The notes below the pieces were generated by a model. It was not told where the DNA came from. It worked only from the letters and a program-made list of their open reading frames with translations, and ran no database searches. From Obrimoposthia wandeli (taxonomy: Eukaryota), in NCBI GenBank assembly GCA_977020255.1, contig CDROCS010006605.1, positions 1-64,000 of the forward strand: a stretch of DNA of 64,000 nt. The letters are read 5' to 3'. A program made the translations under genes and the position numbers. Each line of letters starts with the position of its first letter. Positions within the stretch are counted from its first letter, which is position 1. Below are positions 9,276 through 40,837 of the stretch, piece by piece.

Positions 9276-10418
9276 ATGAAACCAGTTGTTGATTTAAATA
9301 CCGCCAGAGACCGCCTTGTTAGTGGTCAACGTTGGGTTATTAAAATTGGTAGCGCTCTGCTTACGAATGACGGCAAAGGCCTTAATCGCCCAGGCATCCA
9401 GGCTTGGGTTGATCAAATAGCCGATTTGATGTCGCAAGGCATTGAAGTCGTTTTGGTTTCTTCTGGCTCTGTTGCCGAGGGAATGACGCGTTTAGGTTGG
9501 ACTTCACGCCCTAGTGAAGTTCATCAGTTACAAGCCGCTGCGGCGGTAGGTCAAATGGGTTTAGTACAAGCTTACGAAACCGCTTTCCAGCAGCATAATA
9601 AACATACTGCGCAAATCTTATTAACTCACGCTGATTTATCCAATCGCCAACGCTATCTTAATGCGCGCTCGACTTTGCGCACGTTAATTGAAATGGGTGT
9701 TGTGCCGATCGTGAATGAAAACGATACCGTCGTCACCGACGAAATTCGTTTTGGTGATAACGATACGTTAGGTGCTTTGGTTGCTAATTTAGTGGAAGCC
9801 GATACGCTGGTTATTCTGACCGATCAAGATGGTTTATTCACTAAAGATCCACGCCATAATGATGATGCTGAATTAATTACCGAAGGCCGAGCTTCTGATG
9901 CATCGTTTGCTGCTATGGCAGGTGATGGTGGTGCGTTAGGTCGTGGTGGTATGATTACTAAGGTAAAGGCAGCGGGTGTTGCTGCGCGTTCTGGTGCGGA
10001 TACTGTTATTGTCGGCGGTCGCATTGAGAATGTATTGATACGTTTACGTGCGAAAGAAAAAATTGGTACGCTTTTGGTGGCTGATACTGAGCCAGAAGTT
10101 GCGCGCAAGCAGTGGATTGCTGGACATTTACAGCATTCTGGTGAGCTTATTCTTGATGACGGTGCGGTGAAAGCATTGAAGAAGGGCGGTAATAGTTTAT
10201 TGCCCGTGGGCGTTAAAGCGGTGAAAGGTATTTTCCGCCGCGGTGAAGTGGTTGCTTGTTTAGATGGTAAGAGCCGAATTATTGCTAAAGGGTTGATTAA
10301 CTTCGACCATAGCGAAGCGCAAAAGTTGTGCGGCAAGACCAGCGCTCAGCAGCAAGAGCTGTTAGGGTATGTTGGCGAAGCTGAGTTAATACATATTGAT
10401 AATTTAGTGGTGCTTTAG
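9276..10418 (+). CDS. proB: Glutamate 5-kinase (track start 9261; ATG 9276 more likely)
   Basis: [15 protein letters not shown] and NENDTV...FGDND motifs plus a PUA domain; follows obgE. Confidence 0.96.
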
Positions 10419-10447
10419 GGTTAATGAGCAATTGTGGGTTTTAAAAC

Positions 10448-10953
10448 CGCCGTTGTGTTACATATTGGCATGCGCTGCATTAGGTAATTCATTTCAGGGG
10501 ACGCCGTGAATACGTCACTTCGTTCTCCCTGTAGGCTCGTATCTGGCATCCATGCCAGATGACGCCGCCTGAAATGAATCACCTAATACATCACCATAGA
10601 AATTTTCTCAGATTTTAAAATGAATAATTATTTAAAATTTGACGGCTACAGGTGATGTACAAGCTTACTTCAATTCAGTCTTGAGAATGGATTTTTTTAA
10701 ATAGCTACGCATTCAAAATTTGGTCGTAGTGAGCGGTGAGCGCTAGAAGTTAATTTTTAAGGCCATCCGATTCCAGGGAGCGTAGCGCCGTGAATACTTG
10801 GAGCGGCTGGGAATCGTTGAGCTTACAGGGACAAAATGGCAGGACAGCCATTTTGCACAGCCGCAGGCTGCCCGAAGGGCGAAGTACAGGATGTACTGAG
10901 TGAGTGCGAACAGCGTGCCGCCTAAAATTCAACTTCTAGTGCGAGCAAAAGCG
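10448..10953. repeat. Composite palindromic element, copy 1 (long hairpin A 10479-10587, AT-rich spacer, long hairpin B 10740-10942)
   Basis: Two long inverted repeats enclose short hairpins. A 73-nt core at 10831-10903 nearly matches 32025-32098. The flanks align with the reverse complement of 31685-32165. Confidence 0.8.
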
Positions 10954-10964
10954 CACGGTGTAAA

Positions 10965-11065
10965 AAATAGCATATAACCGATCCGTGAGAAGTTTAAAGA
11001 ATCTAACGTCTTGGTCTAGTAAATAGCATATAACCGATCCGTGAGAAACTTAAAGAATCAAACGT
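10965..11065. repeat. 45-bp tandem direct repeat (two copies, 56-bp period)
   Basis: AAATAGCATATAACCGATCCGTGAGAA.. at 10965-11009 and 11021-11065, 42/45 identical. Confidence 0.9.
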
Positions 11066-11109
11066 ATCGGCGTAATTAATAATAATTTATATTTTCAAAC
11101 TTATTTTGA

Positions 11110-11966
<857 letters not shown>

Positions 11967-24859: not shown

Positions 24860-24976
24860 CTCTGTGCACTCTGTGTCTCTGTGGTGAATTTTTTTTGGAC
24901 CGATCCGTAATTCAGTATTTAGAGTTACGAGAAAAGTTATTGACCACAGAGGCACAGAGCGCTTCGCTTCACAGAG
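24860..24976. repeat. Inverted pair of 20-bp CACAGAG repeats (locus 1)
   Basis: CTCTGTGTCTCTGTGGTGAA (24869-24888) and TTGACCACAGAGGCACAGAG (24940-24959), plus extra CACAGAG half-units. Confidence 0.85.
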
Positions 24977-28145: not shown

Positions 28146-30020
28146 ATGATAGAGAAGAAAGTTCGTATTGGCTGTGCATCGGCTTTTTGGGGTGATACCT
28201 CAATGGCGGCTCAGCAATTAGTGAAGCAAGGTCGGATCGATTATTTGGTATTTGATTATCTGGCTGAAGTGACGATGTCGATTATGGCAGGCGCACGTAT
28301 GAAAAACCCTGAAGCAGGCTTTGCCCCTGATTTTGTCATGACCTTAGAGCGTTTGTTGCAGCCGATTGCTGAGCAAGGCATCAAGGTCGTGAGTAATGCA
28401 GGTGGTGTGAACGTACTTGGTTGTGTGGCAGCTTTGCAGGCAGCTATAGATAAAGCGGGCATTGATTTAAAAGTGGCTGCGGTAGAAGGCGACAATCTGG
28501 TTCAGCGTCAGCAAGAGTTTGTTAAAGCTGGTGTGGTTGAGATGTTTTCGGGAGAAGAATTCCCCGAGCAGTGTTTAAGTATTAATAGTTATTTGGGCGC
28601 AAGTGCTGTTCGTGATGCATTAGATGCTGGCGCGGATATTGTGATTACTGGGCGCGTAGTTGATAGCGCGGTTGTGCTTGGGCCATTGATGCATGAATTT
28701 GATTGGTCTGAAACGGATTACGATCAACTAGCTCAAGGCTCACTTGCAGGTCACGTCATTGAATGTGGTGCGCAATGTACCGGTGGTAATTTCACTGATT
28801 GGCAGTTAGTTGAAGCGGGTTACGCCAATATGGGTTTCCCGATTGTTGAGTGTGTGGCGGACGGTTCTTTTGTGGTGAGTAAGCCAGAGGGTACTGGTGG
28901 GTTGGTTTCTGAGGGGACTGTGGGCGAGCAAATTTTGTATGAAATAGGCGATCCTTCACAATATTTATTACCGGATGTTACGTGCGATTTTACGGCGGTA
29001 AACATAGAGCAGTTAGATGATGATCATGTTTTAGTTTCGGGTGCGAAAGGTCGTGCACCTTCGGATCATTATAAAGTCAGCGCGACGTATATAGATGGTT
29101 TCCGCTGTAATGCTTCTTTCATGATTGGTGGTCGCCAAGCGGTCGCGAAAGGCCAGCGTGTTGCGGAAAGTATTATTGAACGCGTCAGTTTTATTTTCCA
29201 AGCGATGGGGCTAGAAGATTTTACGGCGACAGATATTGAAGTACTCGGCAGTGAAACAACTTATGGTGCACATTCTCGTGCTGTAGATAGCCGTGAAGTC
29301 GTAGTTAAAATTGCTGTGCATCATCAAGATAAAAAAGCGTTGGGTATTTTTGCGCGCGAAATCGCCCAAGCAGCGACAGCGATGGCGCCAGGTTTAACAG
29401 GCTTAGTCGGCGGTCGTCCTAAACCCAGCCCGATGATTCGTTTGTTTTCATTCTTGTGGCCTAAAGATCAAATTGAAGTTTCTTATACTTTAAATACTCA
29501 GAGTTCTACAGTCGCTATCGCACAAGGTGAATCATTAGAAGACTTTGAGCAGGCGTCAAACGCTCTGCTTGATGGTGAAACGAATATCAACCTGACTACT
29601 TGTGACGCCAGTACAGCGTTAATTAATTTGGCCATGGCGCGCAGTGGTGATAAAGGTGACCATTGTAATGTGGGTATTCTTGCCCGTGATCCTGCTTATC
29701 TTCCTTATATTCAAAACGCGGTACAGCCAGAAAAAATTCGTCAGTATTTATCGCATATTATGGGTGAAAATAGCGATGTAAAATTGTATTCGTTACCAGG
29801 ACTTAATGCGTTCAACTTGATGCTGGAGCAAGCATTGGGCGGCGGCGGTATTGCTAGTTTACGCATTGATCCACAAGGTAAAGCGATGGCGCAGCAGTTA
29901 TTGGATATGCCGATTGCGGTGCCTGCGAAGTTGGCAAAACAGGCGGAAGAAGATTATCAAGCGCTGATTGGCAGTGCGTATAAAGCAAGCTGCGCTGACA
30001 AAAAAGAGGCAAACATATAA
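28146..30020 (+). CDS. atuA: Acyclic terpene utilization protein AtuA
   Basis: [35 protein letters not shown] and ARSGDKGD motifs; cluster context. Confidence 0.9.
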
Positions 30021-31636
30021 TGGCTATTTTAACCTCAGAAATAGAAATTCATAGCGAAGATTTTGCGAATAATTGTGCTGCTATGCAGGTGGCGATTGAT
30101 GAGTTTCGCGCGGTTGAAGAAAAAGTTTTAGCGAAGGCTGAGCAAGCGAAAGAAAAATTTCGCCAGCGTGGAAAATTATTACCGCGTGAGCGTTTAAATC
30201 TTTTATTGGACAGCGGTTCTAACTTTTTAGAGTTATGTTCACTTGCCGGTTTGAAGATGCATGATGATAAAGACGGCAGCAGCGCGGGCGGCGGTATTAT
30301 TGCTGGCATCGGTTATGTGGCGGGTAGCCGTTGCATGATTCAGGTGAATAACAGCGCGATTAAAGGCGGCACTATTTCCCCTGCGGGTTTGGATAAAACG
30401 TTACGCATTCAAGAAATTGCGCGTGCGAATAAATTGCCGATTGTTACTTTGGCAGAATCCGGTGGTGCAAACTTGCAGTATGCAACGGATGTTTTTGTTC
30501 CGGGTGCGCAGGCGTTTGCTAATCAAGCGCGTTTATCTGCTGCGGGTATTCCTCAGATTACGGTGGTGCATGGTAATGCTACGGCGGGTGGTGCTTATCA
30601 GCCAGGGCTTTCTGATTTTATTATTGCGGTGCGTAATAAAACAAAGATGTTTTTAGCCGGGCCACCTTTGTTAAAAGCGGCGACCGGTGAGATCGCCACG
30701 GATGAAGAGTTGGGTGGCGCTGAGTTGCATGCTTATGAAGCAGGCACGGCGGATTATTTAGCGGAAGATGATGCGGATGGTGTGCGCATTGCTCGTGAAG
30801 TGATGGCAGGTCTGCCATGGGGTGATCAAGTTGCTCCGCGTACGGAAAAAACGTATGACGAACCGCTTTATAGCGCCGATGAGTTGTTGGGTATTGTACC
30901 TTGTGATTCGAAGCGACCTTACGATGTGCGTGAAGTGGTTGCGCGCATTGCGGATGGCAGTGACTTCCAAGATTTTAAACCTGACTTTGATATTCAGACT
31001 GTGTGTGGGTTTATTAAAATTTCAGGTCATGCGGTTGGTATCATTGGTAACAATGGTCCTATTACGGCGAAGGGTGCAAATAAAGCGGCGCAGTTTATTC
31101 AGTTGTGTGATCAGAACCAAGTGTCGCTTTTGTTTTTGCATAATACGACGGGTTTTATGGTGGGCACTGAGTCTGAGAAGAGTGGCATTATTAAGCATGG
31201 TTCTAAGATGTTGCAGTCGGTTGCGAATGCGCGTGTGCCTAAGATTTCGATTGTGATTGGTGGATCTTACGGTGCAGGTAATTATGCGATGTGTGGTCGT
31301 GGTTTGGATCCAAGATTTATTTTTGCTTGGCCCAATAGCAAGACGGCGGTGATGGGTGGCGCGCAAGCGGGCAAGGTTTTACGCATTGTGACTGAAGAGA
31401 AGCAGTTGAAGATGGGGCAGGTGCCTGACGAGAAGATGCTTGATCAGATTGAGCAAATGACGGCGGCGAAATTAGAAGCGGGTTCTACTGCGTTGTTTGG
31501 TACGGCTCGTATTTGGGATGACGGTTTAATCGATCCTCGCGATACGCGTAAGTTGTTGGTGATGCTATTGGACATGTGTGATGAAGAGAAGCATCGCTCT
31601 CTTCAGGGGAATAGTTTTGGTGTTAGTCGTTTTTAG
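30020..31636 (+). CDS. atuC: Geranyl-CoA carboxylase beta (carboxyltransferase) subunit
   Basis: Carboxyltransferase motifs ESGGANL, GNATAGGAY and GSYGAGNYAMCGRG; cluster context. Confidence 0.85.
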   Translation: MAILTSEIEIHSEDFANNCAAMQVAIDEFRAVEEKVLAKAEQAKEKFRQRGKLLPRERLNLLLDSGSNFLELCSLAGLKMHDDKDGSSAGGGIIAGIGYVAGSRCMIQVNNSAIKGGTISPAGLDKTLRIQEIARANKLPIVTLAESGGANLQYATDVFVPGAQAFANQARLSAAGIPQITVVHGNATAGGAYQPGLSDFIIAVRNKTKMFLAGPPLLKAATGEIATDEELGGAELHAYEAGTADYLAEDDADGVRIAREVMAGLPWGDQVAPRTEKTYDEPLYSADELLGIVPCDSKRPYDVREVVARIADGSDFQDFKPDFDIQTVCGFIKISGHAVGIIGNNGPITAKGANKAAQFIQLCDQNQVSLLFLHNTTGFMVGTESEKSGIIKHGSKMLQSVANARVPKISIVIGGSYGAGNYAMCGRGLDPRFIFAWPNSKTAVMGGAQAGKVLRIVTEEKQLKMGQVPDEKMLDQIEQMTAAKLEAGSTALFGTARIWDDGLIDPRDTRKLLVMLLDMCDEEKHRSLQGNSFGVSRF

Positions 31637-31684
31637 TCGTGTTTGGATTCTATAAAGAGCGTTCGACGGTTTTGGTTTATTAAC

Positions 31685-32165
31685 CGCTTTCGCTTGCTAT
31701 CGATATTGGGTATGTCGTTAGGCGGCACGCCGTGAACCCATCCATGGGGGCTCGGAGAACACATCCATGTGTTCTAACGGCCTTAAACGACACACCCAAT
31801 ACCGATACGCGAAAGCTGACAGCAATAAAATTTGAGATGACGTATCTCGTTTCAATATGTGAAAGCTGACATGCATGGGATTTAGAATGTCGAGTTGAAC
31901 AAGAAACTTAAACACAGTGATAAGCCGTCAGATTTAGATTATTGAAGGCTTTGAATAATAGAAAGTATTAGAGGCGATGTATGAGGTGGGTCGTTTGAAG
32001 CCCTTCTACAGCAGGGAGCTGTAGACAAAATGGCAGGATAGCCATTTTGCACAACCGCAGGTTGCCCGAAGGGGGAAGTACATGGATGTACTGAGTGATT
32101 GCCTTACGGCGTGGCGAAGAACGAGCTACCTCATGCAGAGTAAGCCCATATTTAGAATTACGGCG
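31685..32165. repeat. Composite palindromic element, copy 2 (long hairpin C 31686-31816, spacer, long hairpin D 31981-32134), inverted relative to copy 1
   Basis: 22-bp and 15-bp inverted-repeat arms. The core 32025-32098 matches 10831-10903. Flanks are homologous to 10448-10953 in reverse. Confidence 0.8.
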
Positions 32166-32236
32166 TTGTAGAATATTAACTATCTTAACGCCAAATGAAT
32201 TATAAAATTTAAGATTAAAAAAATAGGAATAATAAA

Positions 32237-33394
32237 ATGATCCTGACTCAAGAACATAAAGAAATTAAAAGAACCGTTCGCAACTTTGTAGAGAACGAAA
32301 TTAACCCGTATGTAGAGCAGTGGGAAAAAGACGGTATTTTTCCGGCAAAAGAATTGTTCAAAAAAATGGGCGATTTGGGTTTGTTAGGAATTTCTAAGCC
32401 TGAATCTGCTGGTGGTATGGGTCTAGATTTCTCTTATGAAATGGCTGCGGCGGAAGAATTTGGTGGCATCACTTGTGGTGGTGTTCCAATGGCGATTGGT
32501 GTGCAGACTTCCATGGCGACGCCTGCGCTTGCGCGTTTTGGCAGTGATTATATTAAAGAAACTTTCTTGGCACCTGCGGTTGCCGGTGACATGGTTGCGT
32601 GTATTGGTGTTAGTGAGCCGGGTGCAGGTTCTGATGTTGCAGCGATTAAAACGACTGCGGTAAAAGACGGTGATGATTACATCATCAACGGTACAAAAAT
32701 GTGGATCACTAATTCCACGCAAGCTGATTTTATTTGTTTATTAGCCAATACCTCAGACGATAAAGCGCATAAAAATAAATCATTGATCGTAGTGCCAATG
32801 GATTTAGCGGGTATTAGCTTCTCAGAAAAGTTGGATAAGCTAGGCATGCGTTCATCGGATACTGCACAAGTCTTCTTTGACAATGTTCGTGTACCGCAGA
32901 AAAATCTAATCGGTAGTGAAGGCGCTGGCTTCATGATGCAGATGATGCAGTTTCAAGAAGAGCGTATGTACGTTGCTGCAATATCACTGAAGTCGATGGA
33001 AATTTGTGTTGATAGCACGATTGCATACTGTCGTGAGCGTGAAACATTTGGCCAGCCTTTGATTAATAACCAAGTCATTCATTTCCGTATGGCAGAGCTG
33101 CAAACCGAAATTGAAGCGCTGCGTTGCATGGTCTATCAAGCTTGCGAAGGTTATTTGAACAAAGAAGATATGACCCGACTTGCGTCGATGGCTAAATTAA
33201 AATCTGGCCGCCTAGCGCGTGAAGTAGCCGATAGTTGCTTACAGTATTGGGGTGGTATGGGCTTTATGTGGGATAACGTGGTTTCACGTTTTTATCGTGA
33301 TAACCGCTTGGCTTCCATCGGTGGTGGTGCGGATGAAATTATGATCGGCATTATTTGTAAATACATGGATATTCTGCCGAAGAAACGTAAATAA
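32237..33394 (+). CDS. atuD: Citronellyl-CoA dehydrogenase (acyl-CoA dehydrogenase)
   Basis: VSEPGAGSD, NGTKMWITN and SIGGGADEIM motifs; cluster context. Confidence 0.85.
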   Translation: MILTQEHKEIKRTVRNFVENEINPYVEQWEKDGIFPAKELFKKMGDLGLLGISKPESAGGMGLDFSYEMAAAEEFGGITCGGVPMAIGVQTSMATPALARFGSDYIKETFLAPAVAGDMVACIGVSEPGAGSDVAAIKTTAVKDGDDYIINGTKMWITNSTQADFICLLANTSDDKAHKNKSLIVVPMDLAGISFSEKLDKLGMRSSDTAQVFFDNVRVPQKNLIGSEGAGFMMQMMQFQEERMYVAAISLKSMEICVDSTIAYCRERETFGQPLINNQVIHFRMAELQTEIEALRCMVYQACEGYLNKEDMTRLASMAKLKSGRLAREVADSCLQYWGGMGFMWDNVVSRFYRDNRLASIGGGADEIMIGIICKYMDILPKKRK

Positions 33395-33432
33395 TTCTGC
33401 ATTGTCATAAATGTTGTTATCGAGATTTTAAT

Positions 33433-34278
33433 ATGAGCCAACAAGAATTTGAAACACTAGACTTTGAAACATTAGTAATACAAGACCAAAAACCTGTATT
33501 ACGCGTTATGTTAAACCGCCCTAAGCTGGCTAATGCGATGAACCTGAAAATGGTTGCTGAGCTAATGGCTGTGATGGAGAAAGTTGAACAAGAAAACTAT
33601 CGTATATTAATTATTAGCGGTGGTAATGGCAACTTTTGTGCGGGTGGCGATATTAAAGACATGCAATCGGCGGGTGCTGATAAAAATGCTTTAGTAGAAC
33701 TCAATCGTGCGTTTGGTCACATGATCACGAAAGCGAATCACCTTCCTTGTGCTGTTATTTGTGCATTAGAAGGTGCGGTGCTCGGCGGTGGTTTTGGTTT
33801 GGCTTGTGTTTCTGATTTAGCGATCGCGGTTGAGAAAACTCAGTTTGGTTTGCCGGAAACTTCGCTAGGAATTATTCCTGCGCAAATAGCACCGTTTGTT
33901 GTGCAGCGTATTGGCTTAACACAAACCCGTCGTTTGGCATTATTCGGCAATCGTATTAAAGCGCAAGAAGCGATGAACCTTGGTTTGATTCATCAGGTTG
34001 TGGAGAGTAGTGAGCAGCTTGAAGAAGCGGTCACGAAAGCCATTAAGCTCGCACTTAAATGTGCACCACAAGCCTCGCAAACGACCAAAGCCTTAATTCA
34101 TAGTGTTGATGAACAAGATCTTGAAACATTATTAGATCAAGCGGCCACCGATTTTGCAGATGCCGTGATGGGAGAAGGTCGTGAAGGTGGCGCTGCATTT
34201 ATGCAAAAACGTTTACCTGTTTGGGCTGATGTTTCATTAGAAACGTCTACTGCATCAGCAGAAAAGGAGAACGTATAA
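33433..34278 (+). CDS. atuE: Isohexenylglutaconyl-CoA hydratase (crotonase family)
   Basis: FCAGGDIK, VLGGGFGLACVSD and FGLPETSLGIIPAQIAPFV motifs. Confidence 0.82.
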   Translation: MSQQEFETLDFETLVIQDQKPVLRVMLNRPKLANAMNLKMVAELMAVMEKVEQENYRILIISGGNGNFCAGGDIKDMQSAGADKNALVELNRAFGHMITKANHLPCAVICALEGAVLGGGFGLACVSDLAIAVEKTQFGLPETSLGIIPAQIAPFVVQRIGLTQTRRLALFGNRIKAQEAMNLGLIHQVVESSEQLEEAVTKAIKLALKCAPQASQTTKALIHSVDEQDLETLLDQAATDFADAVMGEGREGGAAFMQKRLPVWADVSLETSTASAEKENV

Positions 34279-37258: not shown

Positions 37259-37376
37259 TTAACCACAGAGGCACAGAGAAGAGCGGAGAAAAGAAGGGCA
37301 ATAATTAGCTGAAGGACAAAGAGATATTGTCATTTTTTATTTACCTTTTTTCTTTTCTCTGTGCCTCTGTGGTGAA
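37259..37376. repeat. Inverted pair of 20-bp CACAGAG repeats (locus 2)
   Basis: TTAACCACAGAGGCACAGAG (37259-37278) and CTCTGTGCCTCTGTGGTGAA (37357-37376). Confidence 0.88.
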
Positions 37377-40817: not shown

Positions 40818-40837
40818 TTCCGTGCCTCAGTGGTGAA
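40818..40837. repeat. Single diverged 20-bp CACAGAG-family repeat (locus 3)
   Basis: TTCCGTGCCTCAGTGGTGAA versus consensus CTCTGTGCCTCTGTGGTGAA. Confidence 0.6.

Follow-up and report, generated by a model that had tools for sequence, protein, structure and literature searches.

The window analysed here, a stretch of 64,000 nucleotides, is bacterial DNA with a G+C content of 43% and zero N. The product of its kdsA gene is 99% identical to the kdsA product of Oleispira antarctica RB-8; Oleispira is a psychrophilic, oil-degrading marine bacterium related to Thalassolituus. Two hairpin-rich blocks occupy gaps between genes of the window, and the DNA flanking them shares 85-91% identity with several Oleispira lineages. 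Block 1 (10419-11127) separates proB (AA_kinase+PUA) from kdsA, and block 2 (31637-32236) lies between a carboxyltransferase gene (atuC-like) and an acyl-CoA dehydrogenase gene (atuD-like) of an operon of the atu type, atu standing for acyclic terpene utilisation. All four genes flanking the two blocks are encoded on the plus strand. The atu/liu-type operon, found at 28146-34278 and onward, encodes an AtuA-like protein, a carboxyltransferase, an acyl-CoA dehydrogenase, an enoyl-CoA hydratase and a biotin carboxylase. The closest relatives of these proteins are only ~91% identical, and no RB-8 protein is found among the 120 best matches listed for the operon (identities down to ~75%); the atu/liu region of the window may therefore differ from that of the type strain RB-8.

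Each block consists of two long imperfect palindromes that point away from an AT-rich spacer. We located four such palindromes, designated E1L and E1R in block 1 and E2L and E2R in block 2, and so recovered in both copies the succession of hairpin, AT-rich spacer and hairpin that had been described in the initial annotation of this DNA. E1L (10446-10647, minus strand) is an element of the A frame, whose arms (10476-10503 and 10563-10590) close a head, X (10504-10562), with an AUGGAU-loop hairpin at 10542-10559; its 5' box, AGCCGTCA, is found at 10640-10647 on the minus strand and its 3' box at 10446-10453. The spacer of block 1 (10648-10735), which is the leader of the B-frame element, is followed by E1R (10736-10955, plus strand), a B-frame element with arms at about 10740-10763 and 10920-10942. 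E1R contains a nested hairpin (10769-10815), the top of which spans 29 nt (10780-10808), and a unit termed Y (10830-10903) that comprises four small hairpins whose loops show AGGACA and CAGGAUG. Two tandem 56-nt repeats (10957-11068, plus strand) are present 3' of E1R. In block 2, the B-frame element E2L (31684-31818, minus strand; arms 31684-31719 and 31783-31818) closes a head X (31720-31782) in which two hairpins (31737-31748 and 31757-31774) have AUGGAU loops. The spacer of this block (31819-31922) is followed by the A-frame element E2R (31923-32167, plus strand; arms at about 31976-31996 and 32119-32139), which begins with the 5' box AGCCGTCA (31923-31930), carries a Y unit at 32024-32098 and ends with the 3' box ACGGCGTT (32160-32167). 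Locus 1 is A-frame+X (minus) / B-frame+Y (plus), and locus 2 is B-frame+X (minus) / A-frame+Y (plus). Inverted boxes of the CGCCGT / ACGGCG type are found at the block ends, and the 5' and 3' boxes of its own give the A element a self-contained look.

A member of this family is built on a long basal stem, termed the frame, and the head that this stem closes comprises between two and about seven small hairpins. The stems of the window elements measure 20-36 bp per arm (~36 bp in E2L), and fold prediction places 4 to 6 inner hairpins in each of E1R and E2R. Compared with dinucleotide shuffles, the predicted folds were far more stable for E1L (z = -4.2), E2L (z = -7.5) and the E2R region (z = -4.4), and weaker for E1R (z = -2.4 and -1.6 in the two folding windows that cover it). 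CsrA-type loop motifs (AUGGAU, CAGGAUG and AGGAYA) occur on several hairpins, on the strand that reads outward from the spacer. Counting over the four window elements, GGA is found 14 times on the outward strand and 4 times on the inward strand, with 4.9 expected, and eight of the outward-strand copies sit in predicted hairpin loops; E1L, E1R and E2R have one AYGGAY loop apiece in addition to other GGA loops. The outward strand folded better in 13 of 13 elements, a strand test that is not decisive because shuffles of the same composition, with G in excess over C, show most of the difference. A protein-coding reading of the small ORFs across the elements was ruled out by indels of 11, 14 and 29 nt between orthologues.

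Homology between the blocks and comparison with known RNA families

We compared the local-alignment scores of frames and cargo between the two blocks with the scores of 1000 dinucleotide shuffles. The cargo Y aligned in direct orientation (10830-10920 with 32024-32116) with 88% identity over 93 nt (E = 1e-22). Frame A aligned with inverted orientation in two stretches, 10439-10533 with the reverse complement of 32173-32079 (66% identity over 96 nt, E = 5e-5) and 10567-10647 with the reverse complement of 32001-31923 (66%, E = 0.003). The scores of the 5' part (z = 10.3) and the 3' part (z = 11.4) of frame A and of the 3' part of frame B (z = 7.2) were each reached by 0 of the 1000 shuffles, indicating that these parts of the scaffold align far better than shuffled controls. 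The 5' part of frame B gave no significant match between the loci in the same comparison, with TTTAAGGCC alone common to both. The proposal that the frames are homologous in inverted orientation thus stands for frame A, in its 5' part as in its 3' part, and within frame B it stands for the 3' part only. The central spacer showed no homology between locus 1 and locus 2. As for the cargo, which had been described as swapped between slots, Y does occupy opposite frame slots in the two blocks, while the match of cargo X (CGCCGTGAA..GGCTCG..CATCCATG) between the loci is weak (z = 3.4, reached by 12 of 1000 shuffles).

Searching Rfam with gathering as well as permissive thresholds yielded zero family matches above cut-off for the elements. 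The nearest family was TwoAYGGAY (RF01731), with a score of 21.1 bits (E = 1.6) for the minus strand of E1L and of 32.6 bits for an element at locus L046 (3568-3700), both below the cut-off of 43 bits and both on the outward strand; E2L, E1R and E2R gave no TwoAYGGAY match in this search. E2L, read on the minus strand, has the canonical TwoAYGGAY layout of two AUGGAU-loop hairpins on one long stem. The TwoAYGGAY motif was first found in 2010 by Weinberg et al. (PMC2864571) and was put forward as a CsrA binder in 2015 (PMC4333381); CsrA binds at short hairpins that carry GGA in the loop, and such sites are usually paired (PMC4383904). The likeness to the Rfam family lies in two adjacent AYGGAY-loop hairpins on a common stem and in the occurrence in Gammaproteobacteria. 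The difference lies in E1R and E2R, which carry one AYGGAY loop, one AGGAYA loop and two further hairpins, together forming the Y unit.

Y units outside the window

Species-representative genomes were searched with a 19-base pattern derived from the first Y hairpin. The pattern had 82 matches, compared with ~4 expected by chance, nearly all of them in Gammaproteobacteria and distributed over many orders. An alignment of thirty Y units shows four small hairpins. Their AGGAnA and CAUGGAUG loops are conserved, with GGA invariant, and their stems covary, both sides having changed in 8 of 19 pairs. The first Y hairpin is fixed by the search pattern in this 30-unit alignment; in the relative at locus L095 it had covaried, and R1, the covariance model of Y, still scores 52 bits there. 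In the 64 kb of the window R1 found exactly two copies, in E2R (93.5 bits) and in E1R (87.3 bits). A plasmid search with E1R and a metagenome scan for the 56-nt repeat each gave no match. Given that G-U pairs are about as frequent as A-C mismatches in the Y alignment, covariation alone cannot separate constraint on an RNA from constraint on a DNA palindrome.

In 29 of the 82 loci (among L003-L077), the Y unit is found within ~500 nt downstream of a tRNA or tmRNA gene, the adjoining tRNAs being of the types Ser, Ala-GGC, Arg, Asp and Gln, and in 29 of these 29 it is on the strand of the RNA gene. The RNA gene with its trailer and terminator is followed by an inverted copy of the acceptor/T strand, then by Y, and then by a direct copy of the 3' end of the RNA gene that begins in the T-loop. 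The basal stem of a tRNA-linked Y is a tRNA minihelix (acceptor/T). The direct repeat measures ~73 nt at L040 (1734-2222), and units of ~175 nt are repeated in tandem at L024 (225-1000) and L028 (3159-4300); further examples of linked Y units are found at L043 (5700-5990) and L059 (1-460). An integrase was considered as a companion of these units, and the ten downstream genes proved mutually unrelated, with none of the ten encoding an integrase. The arrangement recalls CIME-like remnants, integrase-less elements at tRNA genes, in that Y is bracketed by direct copies of tRNA or tmRNA 3' ends, in other orders, and in that units accrete in tandem (L024 and L028). It differs from them in that the tRNA bracketing is absent from the window, that no integrase is consistently nearby and that the repeated stretch can include the trailer and the terminator, which is unusual for an att core. 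The linkage to tRNA and tmRNA genes may hint at how the units move or mature.

A general explanation of the elements would be that they are palindromes of the REP, BIME or ERIC kind, working at the level of DNA or as generic palindromes in mRNA (for example as binding sites of proteins on DNA, stabilisers of operon mRNA 3' ends or processing barriers), with GGA loops unrelated to CsrA. REP/REPIN, BIME, ERIC and bacterial MITEs are likewise intergenic imperfect palindromes, mosaic, strain-variable and present inside operons. Within operons, the elements are found between co-directional genes, as is often the case for REP and ERIC, transcription signals of their own were not detected, and the covariation, without an excess of G-U over A-C, fits the upkeep of a DNA palindrome equally well. 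REP/REPIN sequences have conserved arms around a variable centre, and a RAYT gene is flanked by REPs; the elements described here have a conserved centre and variable arms. Presence and absence at orthologous sites, as in MITEs, is seen for these elements, but no RAYT or transposase was identified in linkage with them, nor a terminal inverted repeat shared by the copies or a target duplication, unlike in REP/REPIN and MITEs. The loops, moreover, are conserved and asymmetric, with GGA on one strand, while the stems are variable, their sequences closely match the CsrA site (PMC4383904), and the tRNA- and tmRNA-linked Y units keep to the strand of the RNA gene without exception. Together, these features make an explanation by REP-like palindromes unlikely, in our judgement.

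The duplications that start in the T-loop, the minihelix-like stem and the addition of units in tandem point to a more far-reaching scenario, to which we give a similarly small chance. The modules would form a self-spreading regulatory RNA kit, in which GGA hairpins insert into loops, including the T-arm of tRNA and tmRNA, and build up a changing set of CsrA-binding RNAs. If true, this would represent an undescribed site- or structure-specific way of moving regulatory RNA, for which an integrase supplied in trans, a single-strand HUH enzyme and maturation via tRNA-like ends are candidates.

Y units also occur outside such contexts. At L030 (4100-4300, minus strand, Oleispira) and L056 (60-180, Shewanella) a stand-alone Y lies in an AT-rich intergenic region and by eye is followed by a hairpin and a U-rich tail, like a small independent sRNA gene; a simple terminator scan made no call at either of the two. 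Psychrobium sp. nBUS_13 (L026, L055, L065, L070 and L071) carries at least six near-identical Y-bearing repeats of ~150-300 nt, several of its loci overlapping or being segmental duplicates of ~99% identity. One of these repeats, on the strand opposite to a 5S rRNA gene, lies 155 nt downstream of that gene.

Gain, loss and exchange at orthologous sites

The gap between proB and kdsA measures 36-38 nt in 12 contig places with near-identical kdsA, including the complete RB-8 genome. From all 12, block 1 is absent as a whole, that is, both hairpins, the spacer and the 56-nt repeats, and no intermediate with one element was seen among them. Two metatranscriptome contigs link 10417 to 11122 via 31 other letters; they speak to the layout only and cannot show transcription. 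The same doublet fills the gap in the metagenome contigs L109 and L118. The gap between atuC and atuD measures 46-55 nt in L095-L099 and is filled in the window, in L046/L114 and in L105/L115, so that relatives with empty sites were found for both blocks. The atuD-atuE gap, which in the window spans 38 nt and holds no element, is occupied by a single TwoAYGGAY-like element in L046 and by two convergent elements in L095. A tree of the flanking genes places L109/L118 outside a group that consists of the window and two empty lineages and is a trichotomy inside; the filled alleles (the window; L109/L118) are separated in this tree by empty lineages. This history of locus 1 would be compatible with one or more losses, or with a minimum of two gains or transfers. 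The comparison of filled and empty alleles shows that, over the time in which species diverge, intergenic DNA gains and loses members of the family.

The edges of block 1 can be placed within ~15-25 nt, and comparison of its filled and empty sites revealed no clear target-site duplication, which had been suggested as a thing to look for. A terminal repeat common to all copies was not found, the stems being inverted repeats that differ between copies, and no linked transposase was found. Short outer boxes are common to the A-frame copies.

Exchange of the inner hairpins is most evident at the atuC-atuD site. The B-frame stem of the window is 100% identical to that of L114 and 92% identical to that of L105. 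The head on this stem is a 57-nt TwoAYGGAY-like X unit in the window and in L114, and an unrelated head of ~110 nt with other GGA hairpins in L105; the L105 head recurs at three other loci with 73-79% identity. Judged by these alignments, the inner hairpins are exchangeable within a conserved scaffold, a real exchange of cargo, and the same stem with different heads bears out the initial description of a modular non-coding repeat family. Other differences are found within heads. In the X unit of L046/L114, one hairpin stem is wholly replaced and its loop kept. Eleven nucleotides within X (10514-10524 of E1L) are absent from the L109 orthologue, and the 29-nt top of the nested hairpin of E1R (10780-10808) is missing in L109, where the hairpin then closes on an AGGGAA loop. 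E2R is without a 14-nt module of the AGAGCCTACAGG type that is present in L105 and L114. The 56-nt repeat is represented by one diverged copy in L109 and L118, as against two in the window. These comparisons show that heads are reassembled out of a common pool of hairpin modules, of which some sit within the loops of other hairpins.

The identity of the elements does not track that of their flanks. E1R is 97% identical to its L109 counterpart, while the flanks are 85% and the spacer of block 1 is 48% identical; E2R is 98% identical to L105 and 78% to L114. This lack of agreement suggests that, in addition to constraint, copies or lineages have recombined with one another, and at the same time it blurs an argument from purifying selection. 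The spacer of block 2 is poorly conserved and its orthologues are 46-60 nt shorter there; overall, spacer identity between orthologous blocks ranges from 48 to 71%.

To describe pairing beyond the window, we scanned metagenomes with an Oleispira-type Y pattern and obtained 27 loci, of which 23 were distinct and 20 had hairpins. An opposite-strand GGA-loop hairpin is present 150-300 nt upstream in 15 of these 20 independent loci. Among the Oleispira loci, L005 is a divergent doublet with the A frame on both sides, L049 is a divergent doublet in which A-frame+Y stands beside a B frame without Y, L020 is a triplet that includes one divergent pair, and L030 has the lone Y; the element at L046 3568-3700 is a single one. 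The frame combinations among loci are A/A (L005), A/B and B/A. L095 contains a convergent pair, and L117, where opposite-strand GGA hairpins are located downstream, is probably convergent too. The earlier statement that the elements are always oriented outward was too strong: outward orientation is the rule, not a law.

These observations bear on the claim, made in the initial annotation, of a single composite element. A two-slot mobile element of ~500-700 bp that transposes as a unit would account for the absence of the whole of block 1 from 12 places without a one-element intermediate, for the inverted boxes at the block ends and for doublets being the commonest state (15 of 20 loci), but it is at odds with frame combinations that differ between loci, with the existence of singles and convergent pairs, with a spacer that is non-homologous between loci and 48-71% identical between orthologous blocks, with the 5' and 3' boxes that the A element carries by itself and with the lack of a target duplication at the block ends. 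We consider such a composite quite improbable. Given the varied frame pairs, the singles, the convergent pairs and the non-conserved spacer, we read each block as two separate elements.

Extended TwoAYGGAY elements and the likely mode of action

In its main text, a preprint by Li et al. of 24 September 2026 (bioRxiv 10.64898/2026.09.22.753630), which covers genomes of Pseudomonadota and mainly of Pseudomonas, describes extended TwoAYGGAY elements with a long basal stem and extra hairpins. Their copy number has a median of 11-23 per genome and a maximum of 202, and 68.4% of the doublets are divergent, with a median distance of 249 bp (10.64898/2026.09.22.753630). According to the same text, repeats accompany the elements at some loci, short ones upstream and larger ones downstream, and in some variants hairpins are swapped for further AYGGAY hairpins (10.64898/2026.09.22.753630). 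The authors suggest that the elements are multivalent Csr/Rsm sponges and that they expand in the manner of mobile elements, by a mechanism that they state to be unresolved (10.64898/2026.09.22.753630).

The blocks of the window agree with this account. In common are the long basal stem closing several hairpins with AYGGAY or GGA loops, the extra or replaced hairpins, the multi-copy and intergenic occurrence, the prevalence of divergent doublets (here 15 of 20 loci, with ~150 nt between stems), in agreement with the 68.4% reported for Pseudomonas, and the downstream repeats, represented here by the two 56-nt repeats after E1R. The elements described here differ in their host lineage, Oleispira, and in that arrays of the 5-6-mer GMTBT(T), which in the preprint lie within 200 bp upstream, are not evident: upstream of the elements the motif occurs 1.05 times per 100 nt, against a background of 0.63, without forming arrays, and in 6 of the 13 elements one box stands alone at -46 to -50. 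The Y unit, the mosaic of frame and cargo at orthologous sites, the empty sites and the linkage to tRNA and tmRNA genes have no mention in the main text of the preprint. Since the window blocks match what the preprint describes, the paired architecture, of which it had initially been left undecided whether it had been reported, is no longer undescribed.

We consider it probable, if well short of certain, that the two repeats of a block are separate members of a dispersed, non-coding multi-hairpin family, standing as a divergent doublet, and that this family is the counterpart, in Oleispira, of the extended TwoAYGGAY elements. The finding is a real and well-defined member of the kind described in Pseudomonas in September 2026. 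What it adds are lineage-specific modules and unusually clear evidence, from comparison of alleles, of turnover and cargo exchange. Modules would be exchanged when copies recombine with each other or when a module inserts into a loop.

With respect to transcription, GacA/UvrY boxes number 3 in the window, compared with 7.5 expected, and none is found in the spacers. A scan of the spacers for sigma-70-like promoters and terminators revealed none beyond chance, and promoter-like matches in the spacer of block 2 were no more frequent than in shuffles. With no promoter or terminator detectable in the spacers, co-transcription with the operons is favoured, and the elements of the window would probably be read within the proB-kdsA and atu operon transcripts. 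Operon transcription would expose the GGA loops of the sense-oriented member only. This member could offer several GGA hairpins to the CsrA dimer, either as a sponge or as a module that binds CsrA locally; the elements would then act as RNA, via CsrA. The Csr/Rsm sRNAs (CsrB and CsrC; RsmX, RsmY and RsmZ) are similar in having GGA repeated in hairpin loops, usually paired and suiting the CsrA dimer, and differ from the elements described here, which lie scattered, vary in their presence and form part of long palindromes, with no Gac-type promoter or terminator of their own detected and no sequence match to these sRNAs. That the elements are vertically inherited sponge genes of the CsrB, RsmY or RsmZ type, placed head to head under Gac-controlled promoters of their own, agrees with the several GGA hairpins per element and with the lone Y units of L030 and L056 and their U-rich tails, but is very unlikely in view of the scarcity of GacA/UvrY boxes, the sigma-70-like promoter and terminator that were not called, the lack of an Rfam match to CsrB, RsmY or RsmZ, the presence that varies among close relatives and the location of elements inside operons.

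CsrA is a master post-transcriptional regulator, and repeats that scatter and reshuffle CsrA-type hairpins in operons between strains could rewire regulation quickly. One of the doublets, that of block 2, is located inside the atu operon of an oil-degrading psychrophile. The mechanism of TwoAYGGAY spread, left unresolved in the preprint, the only paper on doublets of these elements, becomes testable through the filled and empty alleles described here, through the replacement of the head on the same stem at one orthologous site and through the link to tRNA and tmRNA 3' ends.

A second family of palindromic repeats is present in the window at 24868-24959 and 37263-37372, with a weaker copy near 40818. 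In this family CCACAGAGGCACAGAG and its complement form conserved arms around a variable centre, a REPIN-like layout that is the reverse of that of the GGA-hairpin family.
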